From positions 62,001-126,000 of the forward strand of contig JBBPEB010000006.1 in assembly GCA_039096225.1 (NCBI GenBank): a stretch of 64,000 nt of DNA, written 5' to 3'. The position numbers and the translations under genes were made by a program. The stretch is from Blastocystis sp. Blastoise (lineage: Eukaryota; Protista; Bigyra: Opalinata). Positions 3,298 to 27,654 of the stretch are shown piece after piece. The notes beneath the pieces are model-generated. The model was not told the origin of the DNA. It did not search any database and saw only the letters and a program-made list of their open reading frames with translations. Numbering within the stretch: position 1 is the stretch's first letter; each line of letters starts with the position of its first letter.

Positions 3298-4538
3298 ATG
3301 GATAGCACACAGAATAATACTCAGTCTGCAATGATAGAACCAAATACAACTATGAATGCTTTACAAACTGCTTCTGCACCAGTTCAAAATCAGCTAGTTG
3401 AATCTAATGTCGCATTAGTAGCAGATCCAAATGCAGATACTTCTATAAAACCTTGTAGTCGTTTTATTGTGGGTAAATGTATATTTTGTGATCTATGCAG
3501 GTATTTAATATTATTTTTATGATTATAATATTTTTAAGAAATTTTTTTTTATTTACTATTGTTATTATTTTTATTATTATTATTTTGTATTATATATATA
3601 TTTTAATTGTTTAAAATATATATATATATAGATTTCGACATACTTATACACAAGATGAATTAAATTTTTTTCAACAGAATAATACATTTCATGGTTATAA
3701 AGCAAATCGTTCAACAGCATCAACAATATCTAATGTATCAGCTGTTCCTGTTACTACCAGTAATAATAATACTATGAATAATAATAATATGAATAATATG
3801 AATAATAATAATATGAATAATATGAATAATAATAATATTGTTCCTAATACAATTGTTCCTAATACTATTGTTGCTTCACTCCCTATTGTAAATGATGGTA
3901 TCAAGCAATGTTTACATTTCGAAGGAGAGAAACAAATTCACGATAGTTCTATTAATTGTGTTTGCTATTGTCCTGATATGAATTGCTTTCTAACAACATC
4001 TCTAGGTAGTATCAAAGTATATTTATATTTACTGTTATTAGGTTTATAATTATTATTCTAATTCTATTATTATATTTATATTATTATATTTGTTATTATA
4101 ATAATTATAATTATAATAATTATTATTATGTTTATATTTATTATTATTATATACATAGATGCATACAACATCATTAGACTATCAAAGCCATTTTATTATA
4201 GACGGTGAAGTTATTCATTACGATTATTATGTATATTATTATTATTGTTATTATATTTATATTTATATTTATTATTATTATTATTATTCTACTGTTTTTA
4301 ATATATAGTGTAAGTTATTTGTAGCAATTGTTTTTGATAAATATCGAAATGATTTTTATATCTATTCAGTTTTTTTGGAAAATGGTTCTACCAGTTGTAT
4401 GAGAAATGTATATATGTAACTACATATATATATATATATGATTATAACTATATATTTATAGCTTTCTTATCATCCAAAAGGTATTAATATTATTCCTTAT
4501 AATGGACAACCAGCTTTTATTATTTCTGATAAAACAGG

Positions 4539-19341: not shown

Positions 19342-19375
19342 TATTTTTCAAATTTTTATGGAAAATTTCAATTTT
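19342..19375. repeat. Left inverted repeat of the YR element
   Basis: Its reverse complement aaaattgaaattttccat--aaaaatttgaaaaata aligns to 21111-21146 aaaatcgaaaatttccatttaaaaatttgaaaaata with 2 mismatches and a 2-nt indel. Confidence 0.6.
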
Positions 19376-19453
19376 TTTAACAAAACAAAAAAACCTGAAA
19401 ACAATTCAGTTTACAATTGAAAAAGACTGAAAACAAAGTGTTTTCAAGTCATT

Positions 19454-20595
19454 TTAAATAGAAAATTCTTGGGAAATCGTTTGAGACTGATTTATTTCTT
19501 TTTGACGCACTACATTTATATTAATAGTAGTTGATGTTAAACTGCAGTTATTAAATAAAGCAGACATAACATTCCCCAGTTGATCGCGAGTAGGAGAAAC
19601 AGAAACAGAAACCATATCAGCATTCTTCTTCTTTGGAGATGGAGGTAAGATTCTTTTAGCTAATTCTAATCTTCTCTTATTAGTATTTCCAACATAATGA
19701 CTAGCTACATCATGTCCTTTCCACCTTCCTTGCTTCATGAGATCATCAGATGTCGCACCATGTTCAGCAGCAAGAGTCGCCATCGTTCTTCTGAAGCAGT
19801 GTCCTGTGTAAGCATCAGGATTTTCAAGTCCAAGGAGTGTAGCTATTCTACGAGGATAATCACCAATTGCCTTTATTCCAGTCTTTCTCATATCAAATGT
19901 ATCATCAGTAACAGATGGAAAAAGGGGTCCTTCTGGATCAGTTGGCAAGGTATCATAGTATTTCTTCACTATATTATATAGCTTGTAATCATTCTCTTTC
20001 TCTCTTGGTACTATTGCAATAAATCCTTCACCAGACTGGTCTGTTTTGCTCCTTTCAATATTAATATGAACACCATCAGAAAGAAACTATATAAGTATAT
20101 TATTATCTATATATATATATTAATTACTTCTAAATCTTTTCTCTTTAAATCATAGATTTCGCTACGACGCATTCCAGCGTGAAGGGCTATCACCATACAA
20201 GCTTTCAACTGTATCATCTTCAAATCATTGTATGGATTATCAAGAAATTGCCGGCATTGTTCTTCTGAAAAGAAAGGGGTTTGTTTCGGAGGAGGACACA
20301 ACTTGGTATAGTTACGTAGAGCACATTTAATATTCTCAACTGTTACCTGGTTTATGATATAGCTTTCCTTAGCTGATATCATTCTATATGTAGCACAGAG
20401 ACGGGTTTTAATTGTTTTAGGCTTCATTTTATTATCTATAAGATATTGTATATAGGATTCTAATAATACTTCCCTTGTTTTCTCATTTTTAGGATCATGC
20501 TGTTTAGAGTAATCACAAAATTGATTATAATAAATAGTATATCGTGGGGCACTTTTAGAAGGTATTATATTCTTAAGTTCCGTTATCTCACTCAT
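19454..20595 (-). CDS. Tyrosine recombinase (phage integrase/Cre-like, Crypton-type), 366 aa, 2 exons
   Basis: Exon 1 20595-20128, a 41-nt GT-AG intron 20127-20087, and exon 2 20086-19454 join in frame (...DLKRKDLE|FLSDGVHINIERSKTDQSGEG...). The catalytic set is complete: R in HAGMRRSE, K in RSKTDQ, HxxR in GHCFRR, W in GRWK, Y in SHYV. The helical N-terminal region resembles a core-binding domain. Confidence 0.93.
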
Positions 20596-21110
20596 ATCAA
20601 AAATAAAAAATAATTAAAAATGTAATGTCAAATAAATTTGTTACTAGTTATTTATATTTTAATCTTGTTTACTATGTATATTATGAAATATGTGTTTAAT
20701 AATCATCTATTTGTATTAAATTCATTATAAAAATGTACAGTTATTTTTATTTTCATTTAAAACATTGTAAAAGACATACATAACTAAATAACTAATAAAA
20801 TAAATATAATATGATAGTATAGTTATATTCATGACCAGTTTATATATCAATATTTGCCTTTAATAAAGTCATAGAAATAGAAATATCTAGTTTGGACAAT
20901 ATTTATAAAAAATGTCAAAATATCAAATATTAATTTATTAATCACTCATATATTATGTTATGCTATTAGTTAGTGGTGCTAAGAGGAATATTAATTCTTA
21001 TTTTTCTTTAAATATAGTATGAGATAGAATCATTCATTAATGAATTAATGTTTTCATAGCTTAAGTATGTAGTAACATTTCATGTAAATAATGGTTCTGT
21101 TATATTATAT

Positions 21111-21146
21111 AAAATCGAAAATTTCCATTTAAAAATTTGAAAAATA
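21111..21146. repeat. Right inverted repeat of the YR element
   Basis: Inverted partner of 19342-19375. It directly abuts or overlaps the base of the long hairpin. Confidence 0.6.
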
Positions 21147-21148
21147 CC

Positions 21149-21282
21149 TTTTGGATGTTTTCTTTATGAAAATTTGGTAATATTTCAGGTATTTTTTATT
21201 TCACTTGATTTCCCTTCGGGAAATACAACTGAAATACAAAAATAACCTGAAAATTACCAAATTTTCATAAAAACACCCAAAA
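21149..21282. repeat. Long imperfect palindrome / hairpin (~65-bp arms, 3-nt loop)
   Basis: Left arm ttttggatgttttctttatgaaaatttggtaatatttcaggtattttttatttcacttgatttccc (21149-21214), loop ttc (21215-21217), right arm gggaaatacaactgaaatacaaaaataacctgaaaattaccaaattttcataaaaacacccaaaa (21218-21282). Weaker pairing extends to ~21136/21296. Confidence 0.9.
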
Positions 21283-21585
21283 TATATTATTCCAAAAACA
21301 AAGAAGACAAATCACCTGAATATCTATTATAATCATGATTACTCATAATTCAGAAAAATAAAAATTCTGAGTTGACGCTATCATAAATAGCGAACAATAA
21401 GCCAATAAAATGCTTATATCTTGATATAAGCCAATTATCTCCGTCGAAATTGTTGTCTTTTCTCCAATATGAAATTTTTAAATGTCATTTTTCTCCTTTT
21501 CGGAGATTCTTCGTATCACGATGTTTCACTAAAAATATTTTTTTATTTTCATTCCATTTTATCTATAAAAAATTTTGTTTATATT

Positions 21586-24500
21586 ATGATTATACTTCAA
21601 TTCATAGTTTTCTTTGTGTTCACACTATTATGTATGTCTTTTTATTTCGCAATACTTTAAAATGTTTCATTCAACTGTTTTAATATATCATTTTAGATGT
21701 TCAAGCTTGCTCTTCTGATGAACATGAAATCATTGTCAAGCGTTATTATGCAAAGAATGCTGGTGAAATCGTTCAACTTTATTCTGGTGATTCTGCTAAT
21801 TTAAGAAACACACTTGTTTTTAATGATGAATCTGATGCTTCTCAAGATACAGTTGCTGATTATAAAGTTTGTATCGATGGATATACTGATTATAATCTAG
21901 AATTGATGTCAAAGTATATCCATGAAATTGTTGATTTTATTGTTTTTTTATAGGAACTCTCCTACATGGGCTGATGGATCCCTTATAACACTGACTTATA
22001 ACGAAATTATTCTTGTGAGAACAAGTCTGAGTAAAGATGGTAATGAAAAGAAAGTGATCAAGTTAAACTGTATGTATTTTTTTTTTTAACTTTTTTATAG
22101 GTATAAATTATTTTTTGTTTAACTTTTTTATATGTATAGTATATATTTCTATACTTTTAATTATAAATATATATTTTAATATTTATTTATATTTTTTTGT
22201 ATTTGCTAATCTAATATATATTATTATATAGTATCTTCTCTTGTTGATTCAAGAATGAATTGGAGATATTCTACAAAGGTTGATGCTGCTTCTTGGAAGG
22301 AAAAAAAGATAAAAGAATTTGGTGAAGACTATAACAATAAAGAAATCAAGAATGCTGGTTCTAGTGTTTATTTTAGAAAGGATATAACTGTAGATAACTC
22401 GTTTGCTGTTCTTCAATTATCTATTCAAAGTCAAAGTGGATTCATTGTTTATGTTAATGGAATTCAAGTGTATACTTATTTATTACCTGAGTATATTTAT
22501 TTTTATAATATTTAATAAACACATATTTATATATAGATCTTCTAAAATCAATGAAAATACTCCTTCTCAGTCTCTTGTAGATACTCCTGCATATAAACAG
22601 TATATATAATGTTAACATTACTCTATAATATATATAGTATTATAGTTTCTAAAGAATTACTTGGTTCCTCTGTGTCTCTTACTACATTAAAAATAGCTAT
22701 TGAATTACATACTAAAGAAGATCATCTTGAACTTCTTTCTTCTTTTGATGCTCTCACCTATATTACAAATCCTAAAGGTATATATAAATAATAATTAATT
22801 AATAATATATATAATATAGATTCTATTGATACCCTTTCTATATATACCTCTCGAAGATTATTGGATACAAATGAATATACTATGATACTCTTTGAAGATA
22901 ATCAATCTATTGATTTCTCGACTATAGTATCTCCTATATTATCGAATTGTGTTCTATCTCCTGATTTACCTATTGGTTTAACTATATCTTCTAATGGTAT
23001 TCTTTCTGGTACTCCTAAAGAAGTTAAATCTGCTGAATATACTCTATCTTATAATTATGGTGATGATGCTAGTTTTTCAGATACTTATAAATTTAATCTT
23101 AAAATTTTATGTAATCCTATAAATTGTGCACATATTCGTGTTAATAGAATTACATTCTATTATGCTTCTTATGAAAAAGTTGTTATTAAATCAGAAGATG
23201 GAAATGAAATAGATACTTTAATTCAAAATGATAATACAAAGAAAAATTATGATTATTATGGTCCTGTAGGTACTTGGTCTTTTGAACTACTTATAGAAAT
23301 TAATGGTGTGTGGTCTAATAGATCAATGATGACAGTATATATTATAGATGATCTTAGTGATACATCTATTCCTGTAACTAGAATAAGAACTATTTCTAAG
23401 TCTCATGAAACATATTATGTTAATACTAATTATTCTATGTTAATGAGATCTGAATGGAAATATAATACTTATGATTCTTTACCTACAGAATGGTATGGAT
23501 CTTCTGCAGATGATTCTAGTTGGTTTACTATTATAGGTGGTACTATTATTTTTCCTAGTGGTATTAATCAGTATTTTGTATTCCGTAAAACTATTCATAC
23601 TCCTTCTATTGTTAATCAAAAGTATTTTATATTAAACTATAAAACAGTATCGAATACAAAGATTTATATAAATAATCATGAGCTCTCAACACATAGATTT
23701 AAAGATGGCTATTTAGATTCGACAGATTCCTCTACTATAATAGAACAAACAGCAACAGGTCGTCTCTCTCTATTTGACAATCAAGATACTATTACTATTT
23801 CTGTATTACTATATGATAAACAAAATACTATTGATATATCTTTTGATGCTTCTCTTATAATGGCTGTAGATACTAGTCTTCCAGTTTATGGTGATTTTGA
23901 TGTTACATTATCTAACTATTTTATTTTCTCTAATGATGATTCTTTTCTAGACTTGAACATTAAATCATTTATAAGTATTGTAGGTAACGGAGATAAATCA
24001 AGCCCTATAATTTCAATAGCAACTAAAGATGGATATAAATATATAAATAGATATTGTATAACTTATCCTAGTAATAATTTTGAATTTGCTTTAACATCAT
24101 GGAAAGTAGAATCTATAGATATAAATGGTTATCGTCATGAACACTCAGTTGTAGCGGATGCATTTACATCAAGTAATGATCCAAGAAGAAAATGTTTCTT
24201 CTTGTCAGATGTCACCACAGGAATCAATCAATTAGAATTTACATTAATGAATAATATAATTAATAAAGCTAAGAATGATTATACTATATCTGAAATTGAA
24301 TTATTCGTCGATGATATTACTTCTGATATATTACCATCATTAGTTCCCTTTTCTAATCCTTATTATGCTTATGATAATACTACTCTATCTATATCATTCA
24401 CTAATTCGGAATACTATCATGATTTTACTATAACTCCTTCTCTTCCTGATGGGCTAACATTTGATACTACTACTGGTTCTATATATGGTATTATTCATGG

Positions 24501-26694
24501 AGAAAATGGTAATACTGATTATACTATACACGCTACGTCTGTATTTAATACCCCATATGAATATATATTAACTATTTCCATTCAATTATGTCAATTTCCT
24601 TATAATTTTGTTAGCATTCAAGTTGAATGCGAAGAGAAAACTTTTTATAGCATAGACATAAGAGATAGTACTACATTTGTGCTATCTAAAAGGATTTATC
24701 ATCTATATAAAAAAAATTTAGAAGAATATAATTTATGTCTATCTCCATCTTTATACTATATATTTATGTATATTTATTATGGAGATTTTAATTCAGTATC
24801 ACATATATATGTCAATAATAATTATTACACTAAATGTTATCCATCTCATCAGATAGATTTATATTTCACTCAATATGTTGATGCATCCAAGATGCGTATT
24901 GTTTATTCTTATGATAATAATACTCCTCCTAAACATTGGACTACAAGTTTATTTAATGATAATCTATGGTCAACTGTTCCTTCTTCTTCTTCTCTTCCTG
25001 ATGTTCCTAATAGCAGTATTACTCAATATTATAGAATACATTATAACATTGAAGTATTCATGGAATTGTCTCGTGTATTCGATATAACTGTATCTACCTA
25101 TGCTGGTATGATTATATATATAAATGGTTATGAAGTAAGAAGAGTAAATATGAATGATGGTGATAATATAGAATACAACACGTTAGCTACTGATGGATAT
25201 ACTGAATATAAATCATTTAGATCTGTTATTAGTGCTTTTATTGATCCTAATATATGTCTTATAGGTGATAATATTATTGCTATTGAAATACATAGATATA
25301 ATAATATTATTCAACCCAATAGCGGACTTTCTATAAAAATAAGTATTATTGAAAAAAATAATTTATCAATAGAAGGTTCATGGTCTGTTAACGGTAATGT
25401 AGTTCCTGAATATCCATTAAATAATCTATATGATTTCAATGATGATACATACACAAAAGTACTTAATAAATGTTCAAATACTATATTCACTTATACATAT
25501 AATGATGAAATATGTGTAGATGTAAATCAGCTTCATCTATATTATAGACATGATATGAGTGTATCCTATAGTCCTGAGTCTATTGTAATAGAGGGAACTT
25601 ATAATAATGGTGCACAATGGGATGAACTTTCTACAATGGATGGAATAATTATGAATACGATTTATAATCAAGACTTATATTTAAATAAATGTTATAATTC
25701 ATATCGTATGATACTTGCAAAATGTGGAACAGATCCAAGTTTATCTGAAAGTGAAAGTGTTACTATTCTAAATGAACTACAATATTACGTTAATGATATT
25801 CCTGGTTGTATAAGTAATGAATGGTCTGCAACTAGATTTGGTATATACTCTTCTAAGATTTGTCCTAAAGGATATTCCAGTGATGCAAAACGTTTATGTA
25901 TAGGATATGGATCACAAGCAATTGAAGGTGATCCAACATGTATAAAAATAAATCCTTCTAAATTATATTTTGAAGAAACAGATATTATTATTAAAAAGGA
26001 TGATTTCTATGAACAATATTATACAATAGATGCTGTTGATACAGTTATTACAAGTTCTCCTTCTCTTCCTGAAGGTATTATTATAGATTCTGTAACTCAA
26101 AAACTATATGGTACACATATTAATGAATCTCCTAAAACTACTTATACTCTCTCTTATACAAATAATGAAGGCACTATTGTTGACTTATATCAAATCTCTA
26201 TTACAGTTATAGGTTTACCATGTTTAGCTGATAATAATTGGCCAGAAACTAACTCTGATTCTACTGCTTCTCTTCCTTGTCCTCAGGGATATGCAGGTAA
26301 AGTATATAGATTGTGTAGTATTAAAAGTGAATGGGAAGAAGTTGATACTAGTGAATGTATATTTAGTTCTACTCCTTGTACTGGTACTACTTATTATAAT
26401 GGTAATGAATGTATAGAATGTATAAATGGTTATGTAATTTCATTAAATGGTAATAATTATTTATGTACTCCTTGTAATAACAATGAATTTGTATATAATA
26501 ATAAATGTTATCCTAGTGGTGCGACTTGTCCTGCCAGTACTATTGATTCCTATTTATATCCTGAAACTGATATATTGAAGAATGCTGCTGTTAATTGTAC
26601 AAATGAGAATCAATATGGTTATTATAAAGTATTTTGTGATTACATATCTAAACCTACTTGGTCTAATGATATTCATAAAGATCTTTGTTGTATG

Positions 26695-26762
<68 letters not shown>

Positions 26763-27654
26763 TCTATAGATCCTCGGCCTGTTTCTATTCCTGGAAAAGC
26801 TTTAGAATCATTAGATTATTTCATGCAATTAGCGATACCAATTGATGATATTTATTCTTTATTAGTATTTTTAACCAGAATATTTGTGAATATTTTTTCG
26901 TATCAACTCACAGATCTTTTTCTTACTACAAATTATTTAAATGATTATAATGTATATTAGTATTTATTATTCACTTTTATTTAATATATAGTCTATTGAT
27001 TCTCTTCTTCTTCATGTATATTATGGTTCAAGCAGGTATCTATATTCTATCTATTCCTCTTCTAAAAGACAATTATTTATAAATACCATTATTACTTATT
27101 ATAATACTCCATTCAGTTCTTCTTCTTCTCTTAGTAACTATCAAACAATTCTATATAATACTAATGAGTATTGCCACTATTTAGAAAGTGGCCATCAAGA
27201 TGTATTATTAAGTTATTATAAAACATATGTATTTTCTATTGGTGAACAAGAATATTATGAAATTCTTTTTTGTAAACAAATACAATTAGATTATGTTTTA
27301 GTCCCTATTAAAATAGTAGAAATTCCAAATAGAAACATAAAATGTATATCCTTGGTTTTTGATAATTCATCACTAAAATGGATCGGTCATAGCACATTTA
27401 TAGCTATATATAGATCTTTTTTAATTTCTAGTAAAGTTCCTATTTCGCAATTATATAATTTCGTAGTAACTTCCTTATCTCAAAATATTAAAACAATACT
27501 TTATTTAAAATATTTAGTGAATTTCCCAAATGAGATACTAGTTGAAAGTGCAACACTTTCCAGCTATTTTAATGAACAAATATTAAAAAAACAGTTAAAG
27601 AATATCATTCCTTTTAGTTATTCTTCTGTTGAAATTGAGTACCAAGAAATATAA
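21586..27654 (+). CDS. Large secreted/surface protein with putative-Ig (He_PIG-like), galactose-binding-like jelly-roll, HRM-like and Cys-rich modules
   Basis: Spliced signal peptide MIILQFIVFFVFTLLYVQAC. Three PxLPxGL/IxxxxxxGxxxG modules (SPDLPIGLTISSNGILSGTP, TPSLPDGLTFDTTTGSIYG, SPSLPEGIIIDSVTQKLYG). Repeated YFRKxI...G(F/M)IxYxNGxxV jelly-roll units. HRM-like CLADNNWPET...LPCPQGYAGKVYRLC...W...DTSEC. One ~3.9-kb exon. Confidence 0.8.

Follow-up and report, generated by a model that had tools for sequence, protein, structure and literature searches.

We examined a 64,000-nt stretch (the window) of contig JBBPEB010000006.1, positions 62,001 to 126,000 of the forward strand, from the gut protist Blastocystis sp. 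Blastoise (GCA_039096225.1). The window holds a 1,944-bp, recently mobile element, whose only gene is an intact, intron-containing tyrosine recombinase (YR), and whose 5'-terminal module is a ~145-nt imperfect hairpin. The element lies 1.6 kb upstream of a large He_PIG/HRM surface-protein ORF. The coordinates of its parts are collected in Table 1.

Table 1. Parts of the YR element in window coordinates (the recombinase-sense strand is the minus strand of the window).
Position	Strand	Feature	Observation
19348..21291	-	Whole mobile element, 1,944 bp	Both ends defined by an empty paralogous site
21281..21291	-	Conserved 5'-terminal motif AATAATATATT	AATARTATATT across subfamilies A, B and C; AATAGTATATT in wasp and metagenome relatives
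21218..21291	-	Outer arm of the terminal hairpin (arm a)	Folded; covaries
21214..21218	-	Apex C-GAA-G, a GNA triloop closed by C-G, on the recombinase-sense strand	C-GNA-G with N = A, T or C in other subfamilies and outside lineages
21147..21214	-	Inner arm of the hairpin (arm a')	One invariant unpaired base inside AATATT at about 21180-21183
21092..21146	-	Internal segment b', complementary to the 3'-terminal segment	With arm a', complementary to the head-to-tail joint of the two ends (an ICR-like self-splint)
20596..21091	-	Non-coding region before the start codon (presumed promoter and 5' UTR)	No detectable similarity between subfamilies A1 and A2
20128..20595	-	Tyrosine recombinase exon 1	N-terminal domain and catalytic Arg, GMRRSE
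20087..20127	-	41-nt GT...AG intron	Precisely absent from the C22 copy
19454..20086	-	Tyrosine recombinase exon 2, stop codon included	Lys170, His252-x-x-Arg255, Trp278, Tyr287
19348..19402	-	3'-terminal segment b	Pairs with b'; includes a TTTCAGGT box at 19393-19400
21183..21190	+	TTTCAGGT box in the inner arm	Partner box at 21245-21252 on the minus strand in the outer arm

The element and its boundaries

To determine whether the hairpin was real, we folded window 21120-21310 as single-stranded DNA and compared it with 200 dinucleotide shuffles. The native sequence folded at -45.1 kcal/mol, against -16.1 ± 3.0 kcal/mol for the shuffles (z = -9.6), and no shuffle folded as well. An arm-by-arm comparison gave 65 Watson-Crick pairs, 2 G.T, 1 G.A, 1 G.G and 5 unpaired bases per arm. 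The apex read CCC-TTC-GGG on the plus strand (loop at 21215-21217) and CCC-GAA-GGG on the recombinase-sense strand. The hairpin reported in the earlier note, with arms that differ mainly by bulges and have few mismatches, was therefore confirmed. However, the outermost pairs included in that note (21136-21146 with 21292-21296) involve flanking DNA and the adjacent internal repeat and are not part of the conserved stem; the functional hairpin is 21147-21291.

The ends of the element were defined to the base by an empty paralogous site on another contig (C26, locus L014), where the flanks are contiguous, the left flank being 97.9% identical up to 19352 and the right flank 99.0% identical from 21281. 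A 99.8% identical copy was found at an unrelated locus on contig C22 (copy c2). This copy has a continuous 366-aa ORF, identical to the annotated spliced protein (P0001), which the database records on 2 contigs. We found no target-site duplication and only 2-4 nt of microhomology at the junctions (GAAA/AA in the window, TAA/TA in the gut-type family). The 21- and 25-nt flanking direct repeats at two other copies (c4 and c8) are imperfect, and c8 lies in a tandem array, so these repeats pre-date insertion.

A profile search of the protein gave Phage_integrase (PF00589) at 3.9e-13 and no other family at E ≤ 1, so that there was no match to DUF3504, the criterion for CryptonA. Residues R143, K170, H252, R255, W278 and Y287 were invariant or nearly invariant across 27 relatives, and the best solved relative was Cre (1e-8). 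The nearest named relatives were uncharacterised insect "Tyr recombinase domain" proteins; cluster look-ups gave only "hypothetical" or "Tyr recombinase domain" names, and a protein search with a broader profile added nothing. The elements with defined ends (1.6-2.0 kb) contained only the YR ORF, with no reverse transcriptase (RT), RNase H or methyltransferase. RT loci (at least 20 RT ORFs) lie elsewhere in the genome, and no RT-bearing partner shared these ends.

Layout of the ends in other copies and lineages

The genome has 11 YR loci, and four subfamilies (A, B, C and D) share one layout: terminus AATARTATATT, arm, C-GNA-G apex, arm', then a segment complementary to the element's far end. 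Subfamilies B and C each have two ~99% identical copies at different loci, whose homology starts at the hairpin base. All full hairpin matches in the 33-Mb genome lie at YR loci, the only extras being two short fragments that end at the exact terminus. The alignment score of b' with the far end beat 500 of 500 shuffles in subfamilies A, B and C. A head-to-tail joint of the two ends would lie inside a ~260-nt palindrome, and cofold and junction folds showed the two termini abutting on a'b'. The TTTCAGGT box had 5 matches in 64 kb, of which 3 lie inside the 1.9-kb element (expected 1.6 for the whole window).

The same layout was found in 26 of 58 outside loci, including metagenomic relatives, forming 19 distinct hairpin clusters, always 240-540 nt upstream of the gene or just past its 3' end. 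In the wasp Eretmocerus, two 98.2% identical copies run exactly from segment b to the outer end of the palindrome. Six of 11 outside loci with ample flanks showed no palindrome; one of these (L034) belongs to a hairpin-bearing family, and the other five are weaker or partial matches. A relative (L038) carries a precise head-to-tail joint, although this could come from tandem copies rather than a circle, and another copy (L034) starts exactly at the mirror-image site and lacks only the hairpin. Beetle and fly loci (L085 and L086) contain several YR fragments and many palindromes, of which only L085 5684-5770 fitted the rule, and ends could not be defined there.

Covariation and strand bias of the stems

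We then examined whether the structure is maintained. In the stem alignment 90.7% of cells were paired, against 83.4% in shuffles (0 of 500 reached the observed value) and 38-64% in slid controls. Compensatory changes were seen at 14 pairs, and one unpaired base (alignment column 115) was invariant in 7 sequences of 4 lineages.

Non-Watson-Crick oppositions were strongly strand-biased when the strand reading inward from the terminus (the top strand) was set only by position relative to the gene: G.T 61 vs A.C 26 (p = 2e-4), G.A 65 vs C.T 14 (p = 5e-9), and G.G 18 vs C.C 1 (p = 8e-5). The top strand was favoured in 21 lineages and the bottom strand in 4. The top strand folded better in 22 of 27 lineages with DNA parameters. 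However, RNA energy parameters also favoured it (23 of 27), so an RNA role is not excluded by energetics.

The apex is a C-GNA-G mini-hairpin (GAA, GTA or GCA), often flanked by CGAG...CGAG tandem G.A pairs, and it lies on the sense strand when the hairpin is upstream of the gene and on the antisense strand when it is downstream. There were exceptions: subfamily D (copy c10) and L032 carry the apex in the flipped orientation; L054, L059 and L069 show no GNA apex and fold better on the bottom strand; and L052 also lacks a GNA apex, though its top strand folds better. The stability of d(GNA) loops needs the C-G closing pair (PMC3201870), and natural mini-hairpins are described at single-strand priming sites and hairpin promoters, including CCGAAGG in RSF1010 ssiA (PMC13037366). 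A search of Rfam 15 gave only sub-threshold plant miRNA-precursor look-alikes on both strands (38 bits against a cut-off of 83).

Interpretation and comparison with known systems

We interpret the hairpin as the cis-acting terminal module of a Crypton-type transposon that encodes only a tyrosine recombinase, and propose, with no more than moderate confidence, that its attachment site works as folded single-stranded DNA. Read inward on the top strand, the element is AATARTATATT, arm a, apex, arm a', segment b', the recombinase gene in either orientation, then segment b. Because a'b' is complementary to b joined to a, a single top strand can fold so that its two ends, and in the chromosome the two element-flank junctions, lie side by side on one continuous helix, with the conserved terminal motif in a small internal loop. 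In this view the recombinase would act on the folded top strand, excise or close a single-stranded circle and insert it by one strand exchange at a short (2-4 nt) microhomology, after which host replication would make the second strand, as for integron attC cassettes and CTXphi. The mini-hairpin apex would nucleate folding and may also serve as a single-strand priming signal. The mobility, the exact ends, the conserved layout, the covariation, the strand-specific design and the head-to-tail joint in a relative were shown by our analysis, while recombinase binding, recombination of the single strand itself and the identity of the cut strand are inferred from sequence alone. The precise intron loss in c2 hints at an RNA or cDNA step that this model does not need.

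The interpretation offered in the earlier note, an undescribed mobile system recombining through a hairpin or single-stranded end or using a hairpin RNA, was partly supported. The hairpin sat at a fixed end in every subfamily and in distant relatives, formed one mobile unit with the recombinase rather than a MITE dispersed on its own, and covaried with a conserved, strand-specific asymmetry, which favours a folded single strand. Its suggestion that cGAAg is a DNA mini-hairpin on the recombinase-sense strand generalises to a C-GNA-G rule across lineages. However, the system is not wholly new, because the enzyme and gene content are those of Crypton-type YR-only transposons. The analogy with poxvirus-type hairpin telomeres fails, because the element boundary lies at the base of the hairpin and not at its apex in every family with defined ends, and the cUUCGg RNA-tetraloop reading fails in lineages whose complement is not c(UNCG)g, namely subfamily C and the GGC-GCA-GCC lineages.

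The strongest alternative, which we consider unlikely, is that the site works as double-stranded DNA: the element would excise as a double-stranded circle, as is thought for Cryptons (PMC3212892), and the ~260-nt palindrome at the circle junction, perhaps extruded as a cruciform, would be an attP-like region with inverted arrays of TTTCAGG-type boxes for the recombinase or accessory proteins, with crossover in ordinary duplex DNA at the b|a junction. This would explain the position, the covariation of binding boxes and the head-to-tail joint in L038, and agrees with the Cre-like enzyme, the repeated TTTCAGGT boxes in both arms and near the 3' end, and the partial dyad symmetry around the crossover in subfamilies A, B and C. 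It does not explain why spacer sequence between the boxes stays complementary, why mismatches are so biased to G-containing pairs on one strand, or why the apex is kept on the strand defined by the terminus rather than by the gene, and in a cruciform both strands fold, so one-strand optimisation would be unnecessary. A role as RNA, in which an inward transcript starting at or outside the terminus carries a 5' hairpin that regulates the recombinase, feeds small-RNA pathways or guides recombination, appears more doubtful still. The G.U-type wobble bias and better top-strand folding are classic signs of RNA structure, the complement of the window's apex is c(UUCG)g, the gene appears to be expressed and spliced (the annotated spliced protein equals the intron-less ORF), and the intron loss in c2 and the RT ORFs are compatible with it. 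In contrast, the favoured strand flips relative to the gene when the hairpin lies downstream, so it cannot be a common mRNA leader; the hairpin starts within 3-10 nt of the element's end, leaving no internal promoter; the loops are GNA triloops, not the GNRA or UNCG tetraloops expected for RNA; and the G.G vs C.C bias fits DNA mismatch stability better than RNA.

A DIRS-type retro-mobility signal, in which a'b' would restore or join the ends of a cDNA made by an RT supplied in trans, is very unlikely, although the topology matches the DIRS-1 internal complementary region (ICR), c2 has lost its intron and RTs are present in the genome. The elements encode no RT, most copies keep the intron, and in upstream-type elements the well-folding strand is the mRNA-sense strand, not the first-strand cDNA. 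If one arm were copied from the other each cycle the arms would be perfectly complementary, whereas the same mismatches and bulges are inherited across copies and subfamilies. Finally, an unrelated foldback or MITE, or an invertible promoter switch for the neighbouring surface-protein gene, was refuted. The genome is AT-rich and full of other palindromes, but the hairpin occurs only with YR genes apart from the two terminal fragments, the whole unit is an insertion relative to an otherwise 98-99% identical paralogous locus, copies lie at unrelated loci, and the inverted repeats are the element's own end and its internal complement.

More tentatively, a widespread lineage of eukaryotic Crypton-type transposons, found from a stramenopile gut protist to insects, may transpose through folded single-stranded DNA whose two ends are self-splinted by an internal complement, with a DNA mini-hairpin nucleating the fold. 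This would be the first eukaryotic counterpart of integron attC and CTXphi recombination, and a plausible ancestor of the DIRS ICR, linking Cryptons and DIRS retrotransposons mechanistically. Cryptons are the least understood class of eukaryotic DNA transposons; their transposition has never been studied experimentally and their ends are described as featureless (PMC3212892). Base-precise ends, a cis-architecture shared across very distant hosts and a clear signature that one DNA strand is the functional form turn the question of how YR-only transposons recognise and join their ends into experiments with defined oligonucleotides and a 366-aa protein. They also suggest where the DIRS ICR came from, and give annotators a structural marker for finding the ends of such elements. 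We found no report linking Cryptons with hairpins or palindromes in the literature searched, which was incomplete and did not cover Repbase Reports.

Mini-hairpin single-strand initiation signals (the phage G4, St-1 and alpha3 origins, RSF1010 ssiA and the N4 hairpin promoters) have the same C-GNA-G or GNNA motif at the tip of a hairpin that functions only in single-stranded DNA (PMC13037366). Those are priming or promoter signals of bacterial replicons and are not linked to a recombinase, and a priming role here is only a possibility. Integron attC sites and CTXphi attP(+) are imperfect hairpins whose function depends on one strand, with the crossover at the stem base, conserved unpaired bases, a bubble at the exchange point, and integration that leaves no duplication and is completed by replication (reviewed in PMC8946536). 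The strand-specific imperfect hairpin, conserved unpaired base and boundary at the stem base were all found here, as a functional analogy only. Here the host is eukaryotic, the recombinase is carried by the element itself, the arms are much longer, there is a mini-hairpin apex, and a second stem (b/b') brings in the far end.

The DIRS-1 ICR is likewise an internal stretch complementary to the two extremities placed side by side, so that single-stranded ends can be aligned and joined into a circle that a YR then integrates (PMC7192593). In our elements there is no RT, RNase H, methyltransferase or gag and there are no long inverted terminal repeats; the complement directly abuts one terminus, which creates the hairpin, and complementarity is imperfect (about 83-86%) with inherited asymmetries, whereas the DIRS-1 ICR is exactly complementary. 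Cryptons (CryptonF/S/A/I; PMC3212892) have a single gene for a Cre-like tyrosine recombinase, sometimes with introns, no RT and a low copy number, as seen here. The two ends of our elements are not terminal inverted repeats or long direct repeats of each other, and the 2-4 nt of microhomology is shorter than the 4-6 bp direct repeats reported as the recombination substrate of Cryptons. The ends (AATARTATATT and ...TTTGA, ...AAAGT or ...ATAAAA) are not the 5-6 bp, mostly TATGG, terminal direct repeats of CryptonS, TATGG occurring only about 10 nt inside one end. While Cryptons are described as lacking recognisable terminal structure (PMC3212892, PMC13465315), these elements have a conserved ~135-150-nt terminal hairpin with a strand-specific C-GNA-G apex and an internal complement of the far end.

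Structure of the element and its recombinase gene

To test whether the hairpin described in the earlier note was real, we folded window 21120-21310 as single-stranded DNA. The region formed one long imperfect hairpin with an energy of -45.1 kcal/mol, against -16.1 +/- 3.0 kcal/mol for shuffled sequences (z -9.6). The apex was CCC-TTC-GGG on the + strand, which is CCC-GAA-GGG on the strand with the sense of the neighbouring recombinase gene. The arms contained 65 Watson-Crick pairs, four non-canonical oppositions and five unpaired bases each. The description in the note, of a long hairpin whose arms differ mainly by bulges and carry this apex, was accurate.

The window comes from a 33.3-Mb genome with ~22% G+C. 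A paper on tortoise isolates of Blastocystis (PMC12129017) does not mention these elements or any recombinase. A 6-kb query around the hairpin showed that window 19345-21291 has a 98% copy on contig C22, whereas the DNA to the left and right of that stretch is contiguous on contig C26. Base-level comparison gave an insertion of exactly 1,944 bp into ...ACTAATTTATTTT|CCAAAAACAAAG..., with no target duplication and only 2-4 nt of ambiguity. The hairpin is therefore one end of a mobile element, and the boundary lies 3 nt from the first paired base. The element sits 1.6 kb upstream of a 1,302-aa He_PIG/HRM-domain ORF that ends in a long poly-Tyr run and belongs to a multi-copy family with many 75-88% paralogues, and the C26 paralogue is the empty site.

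On the minus strand lie two ORFs with weak Phage_integrase matches. The C22 copy differs from the window copy by three small differences (two substitutions and a 1-nt indel) and one 41-bp deletion. The deleted stretch begins GT and ends AG, and its removal fuses the two ORFs into a 366-aa frame, showing a precise intron loss. The fused protein equals an annotated database protein (P0001) that is recorded on two contigs, and the intron in the window copy is therefore real. With so few other differences between the two copies, the loss suggests a recent cDNA-mediated event, and the genome has at least 20 large reverse-transcriptase (RT) ORFs. The fused protein matched Phage_integrase at 3.9e-13 and keeps Arg143, Lys170, His252-x-x-Arg255, Trp278 and Tyr287. 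Its closest solved relative was Cre (1e-8). The element has no other ORF.

We found a second feature in the ~50 nt just inside the hairpin (segment b'), which are the inverted complement of the other end of the element (segment b). The same held in subfamilies B and C of this genome, with alignment scores that beat 500 of 500 shuffles in all three of A, B and C, and it also held in subfamily D and in a wasp element. The inner arm of the hairpin (a') plus b' is therefore complementary to the far end b joined to the near end a. Cofolding the last 60 nt with the first 215 nt of the top strand (the strand that reads 5'->3' from the hairpin terminus inward) put the two termini side by side on that internal segment, and folding the head-to-tail joint gave one continuous ~260-nt stem. 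In B and C the conserved terminal motif lies in a small asymmetric internal loop at the joint. This is the topology of the DIRS-1 internal complementary region (ICR; PMC7192593), but here there is no reverse transcriptase and the pairing is imperfect. The 3' untranslated end of the element also forms small hairpins (z -3.1) and contains a third TTTCAGGT box about 45 nt from the terminus.

Coordinates of the element, its parts and the copies compared (C, contigs of the Blastocystis genome; L, fetched loci)
Feature	Location	Locus coordinates
Whole element	window 19348-21291	
Terminal hairpin	window 21147-21291	
Segment b'	window 21092-21146	
Segment b	window 19348-19402	
41-nt intron, absent from the C22 copy (L009)	window 20087-20127	
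Small hairpins of the 3' untranslated end	window 19395-19450	
Terminal modules compared between A1 and A2	window 19348-19402 and 21118-21291	
A2 copy	C15:648095-650066	L010
He_PIG/HRM-domain ORF	window 22861-26769	
Paralogue with the empty site	C26:1233188-1237318	L014
Solo terminal fragment, 108 nt	C28:404120-404227	L011 4121-4228
Solo terminal fragment, 33 nt	C22:549692-549724	L015 3693-3725
Copy c8 with surrounding inverted repeats	C28:299000-308999	L018; gene-oriented 1730-1977 and 3732-3980
Metagenomic hairpin		L031 2739-2878
Metagenomic hairpin with inverted centre		L032 84-223
Head-to-tail joint		L038 1-60
Start of the copy lacking the hairpin		L034 2861

Copies in the genome and relatives elsewhere

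A census of the genome showed eleven recombinase loci, which fall into four subfamilies. Subfamily A has the window copy, the C22 copy and a 73%-identical copy on C15. Subfamily B has two 99% copies plus one at 70% (about 1,976-1,979 bp), subfamily C has two 99% copies (about 1.6 kb), and subfamily D has more diverged copies. In A, B and C the homology between copies begins at AATARTATATT, directly at the base of a 130-150-nt hairpin, and D has a 100-nt hairpin in the same position. Between A1 (the window type) and A2 (the C15 copy) the two terminal modules are 96-97% identical, although the gene is only 73% identical and the ~300 nt upstream of the start codon are unalignable. Either the ends are under very strong constraint or they were recently exchanged between elements.

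The hairpin sequence occurs nowhere else in the genome, except for two short solo fragments (108 and 33 nt) that end at the exact element terminus. The longer fragment breaks inside the CCTGAAA box of the inner arm. This result ruled out an unrelated MITE dispersed independently of YR genes, a condition that the earlier note had set as a refutation of its own reading. Copy c8 lies inside a ~29-nt tandem array and between 250-bp inverted repeats (88% identical) that are not part of the element. Copy c4 has a 21-nt imperfect direct repeat at its flanks and a separate near-perfect 92-nt palindrome about 130 nt upstream.

A profile search of 1.84 billion representatives returned 546 proteins at E <= 1e-30. 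The nearest were unnamed proteins on 1.3-3.9-kb metagenomic contigs, and the named relatives were uncharacterised insect proteins. Among 58 outside loci that we examined, 26 have a palindrome, mostly ~85-200 nt and typically ~135 nt, and these form 19 distinct sequence clusters. Most of these palindromes lie either 240-540 nt upstream of the gene or just beyond its 3' end. Most loci without a palindrome are contigs too short to show it, while of 11 loci with ample flanks, five have one.

In the wasp Eretmocerus hayati, two copies on different chromosomes are 98.2% identical. The shared stretch runs exactly from a 27-nt segment b to the outer end of a 138-nt palindrome, and b' lies directly inside the palindrome. 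The top strand begins AAATAGTATATTAC, almost the Blastocystis terminus. In a family from human-gut-type metagenomes, five independent insertions share the ends TTGTAG...GGATAA(A), with TAA or TA microhomology. One contig of this family (L038) carries a precise head-to-tail joint, GGATAA|TTGTAG, from a circle or a tandem, and one copy (L034) starts exactly at the mirror-image position, |TTTATCC, and lacks only the hairpin. Ends are defined only where two or more copies were available, namely Blastocystis A, B and C, the gut-type family and one wasp family.

Covariation and strand bias of the hairpin

To determine whether the structure is selected, we aligned seven hairpins from four Blastocystis lineages. 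In this alignment 90.7% of cells paired, against 83.4% in shuffles (0 of 500 reached the observed value). Compensatory double changes were seen in 14 of 52 pairs, and sliding the partner by 1-3 columns dropped pairing to 38-64%. One unpaired base was invariant.

We then compared the two strands for 26 de-replicated hairpins, with the top strand defined only by position, as sense if the hairpin is upstream of the gene and antisense if it is downstream. Non-canonical oppositions showed a strong bias to one strand.

Non-canonical oppositions on the top strand and their complements
Top-strand opposition	Count	Complement	Count	p
G.T	61	A.C	26	2e-4
G.A	65	C.T	14	5e-9
G.G	18	C.C	1	8e-5

At lineage level, 21 favoured the top strand and 4 the bottom (p 9e-4). 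The top strand folded better in 22 of 27 lineages, and these energy differences are conservative because the ViennaRNA DNA parameters do not model GNA or tandem G.A bonuses.

On the same strand the apex is C-GNA-G, with GAA, GTA or GCA as the loop. Many lineages embed it in CACGAG-(N)C-GNA-G(N)-CGAGTG, which gives tandem sheared G.A pairs. d(GNA) triloops are exceptionally stable only with a C-G closing pair (PMC3201870), and natural mini-hairpins are known at single-strand priming sites (phage G4, RSF1010 ssiA CCGAAGG) and at N4 hairpin promoters (PMC13037366). However, there were exceptions. Subfamily D (copy c10) and L032 have the apex flipped. L032 and L031 are metagenomic copies that are 97% identical, but the central ~27 nt of the hairpin, apex included, are exactly inverted between them. 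The outside loci L054, L059 and L069 showed no GNA apex and folded better on the bottom strand, while L052 also lacked a GNA apex although its top strand folded better.

Inferred mechanism and comparison with known elements

The best-supported reading, which we hold with moderate confidence, is that the hairpin together with b' is an attachment site that functions as folded single-stranded DNA of the top strand. In this view folding would bring the two ends together on one helix, the recombinase would exchange that strand at a 2-4 nt microhomology, and replication would supply the complement, as in integron attC and CTXphi systems. Our sequence comparisons establish the mobility of the element, its ends, its layout, the covariation, the strand bias and, in a relative, a head-to-tail joint, whereas the single-stranded chemistry is inferred from sequence alone. 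The interpretation in the earlier note, of a folded single-stranded recombination site or a structured RNA beside the tyrosine recombinase, was supported in part.

Among the alternatives, a duplex attP-like palindrome is unlikely but the least so. An RNA hairpin is more doubtful. The complement of the apex is a c(UNCG)g RNA tetraloop only in some lineages and is not one in subfamily C or in the GGC-GCA-GCC group, and the favoured strand flips relative to the gene when the hairpin lies downstream, both of which argue for DNA rather than RNA. A DIRS-type cDNA splint with reverse transcriptase supplied in trans is less likely again, being favoured by the intron-less copy and by the RT ORFs of the genome, but opposed by the inherited arm asymmetries and the absence of an RT partner. 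An unrelated foldback or an invertible switch was refuted.

By gene content and enzyme these are Crypton-type elements. The protein did not match DUF3504 (CryptonA), and the TATGG ends of CryptonS are not present. Cryptons are described as lacking terminal inverted or long direct repeats and as having only 4-6-bp direct repeats (PMC3212892, PMC13465315). Neither of these papers mentions hairpins or palindromes, and our full-text searches, which did not cover Repbase Reports, found no such report. What is new relative to these descriptions is a conserved, strand-specific terminal hairpin with an ICR-like complement in a broad Crypton-like lineage.
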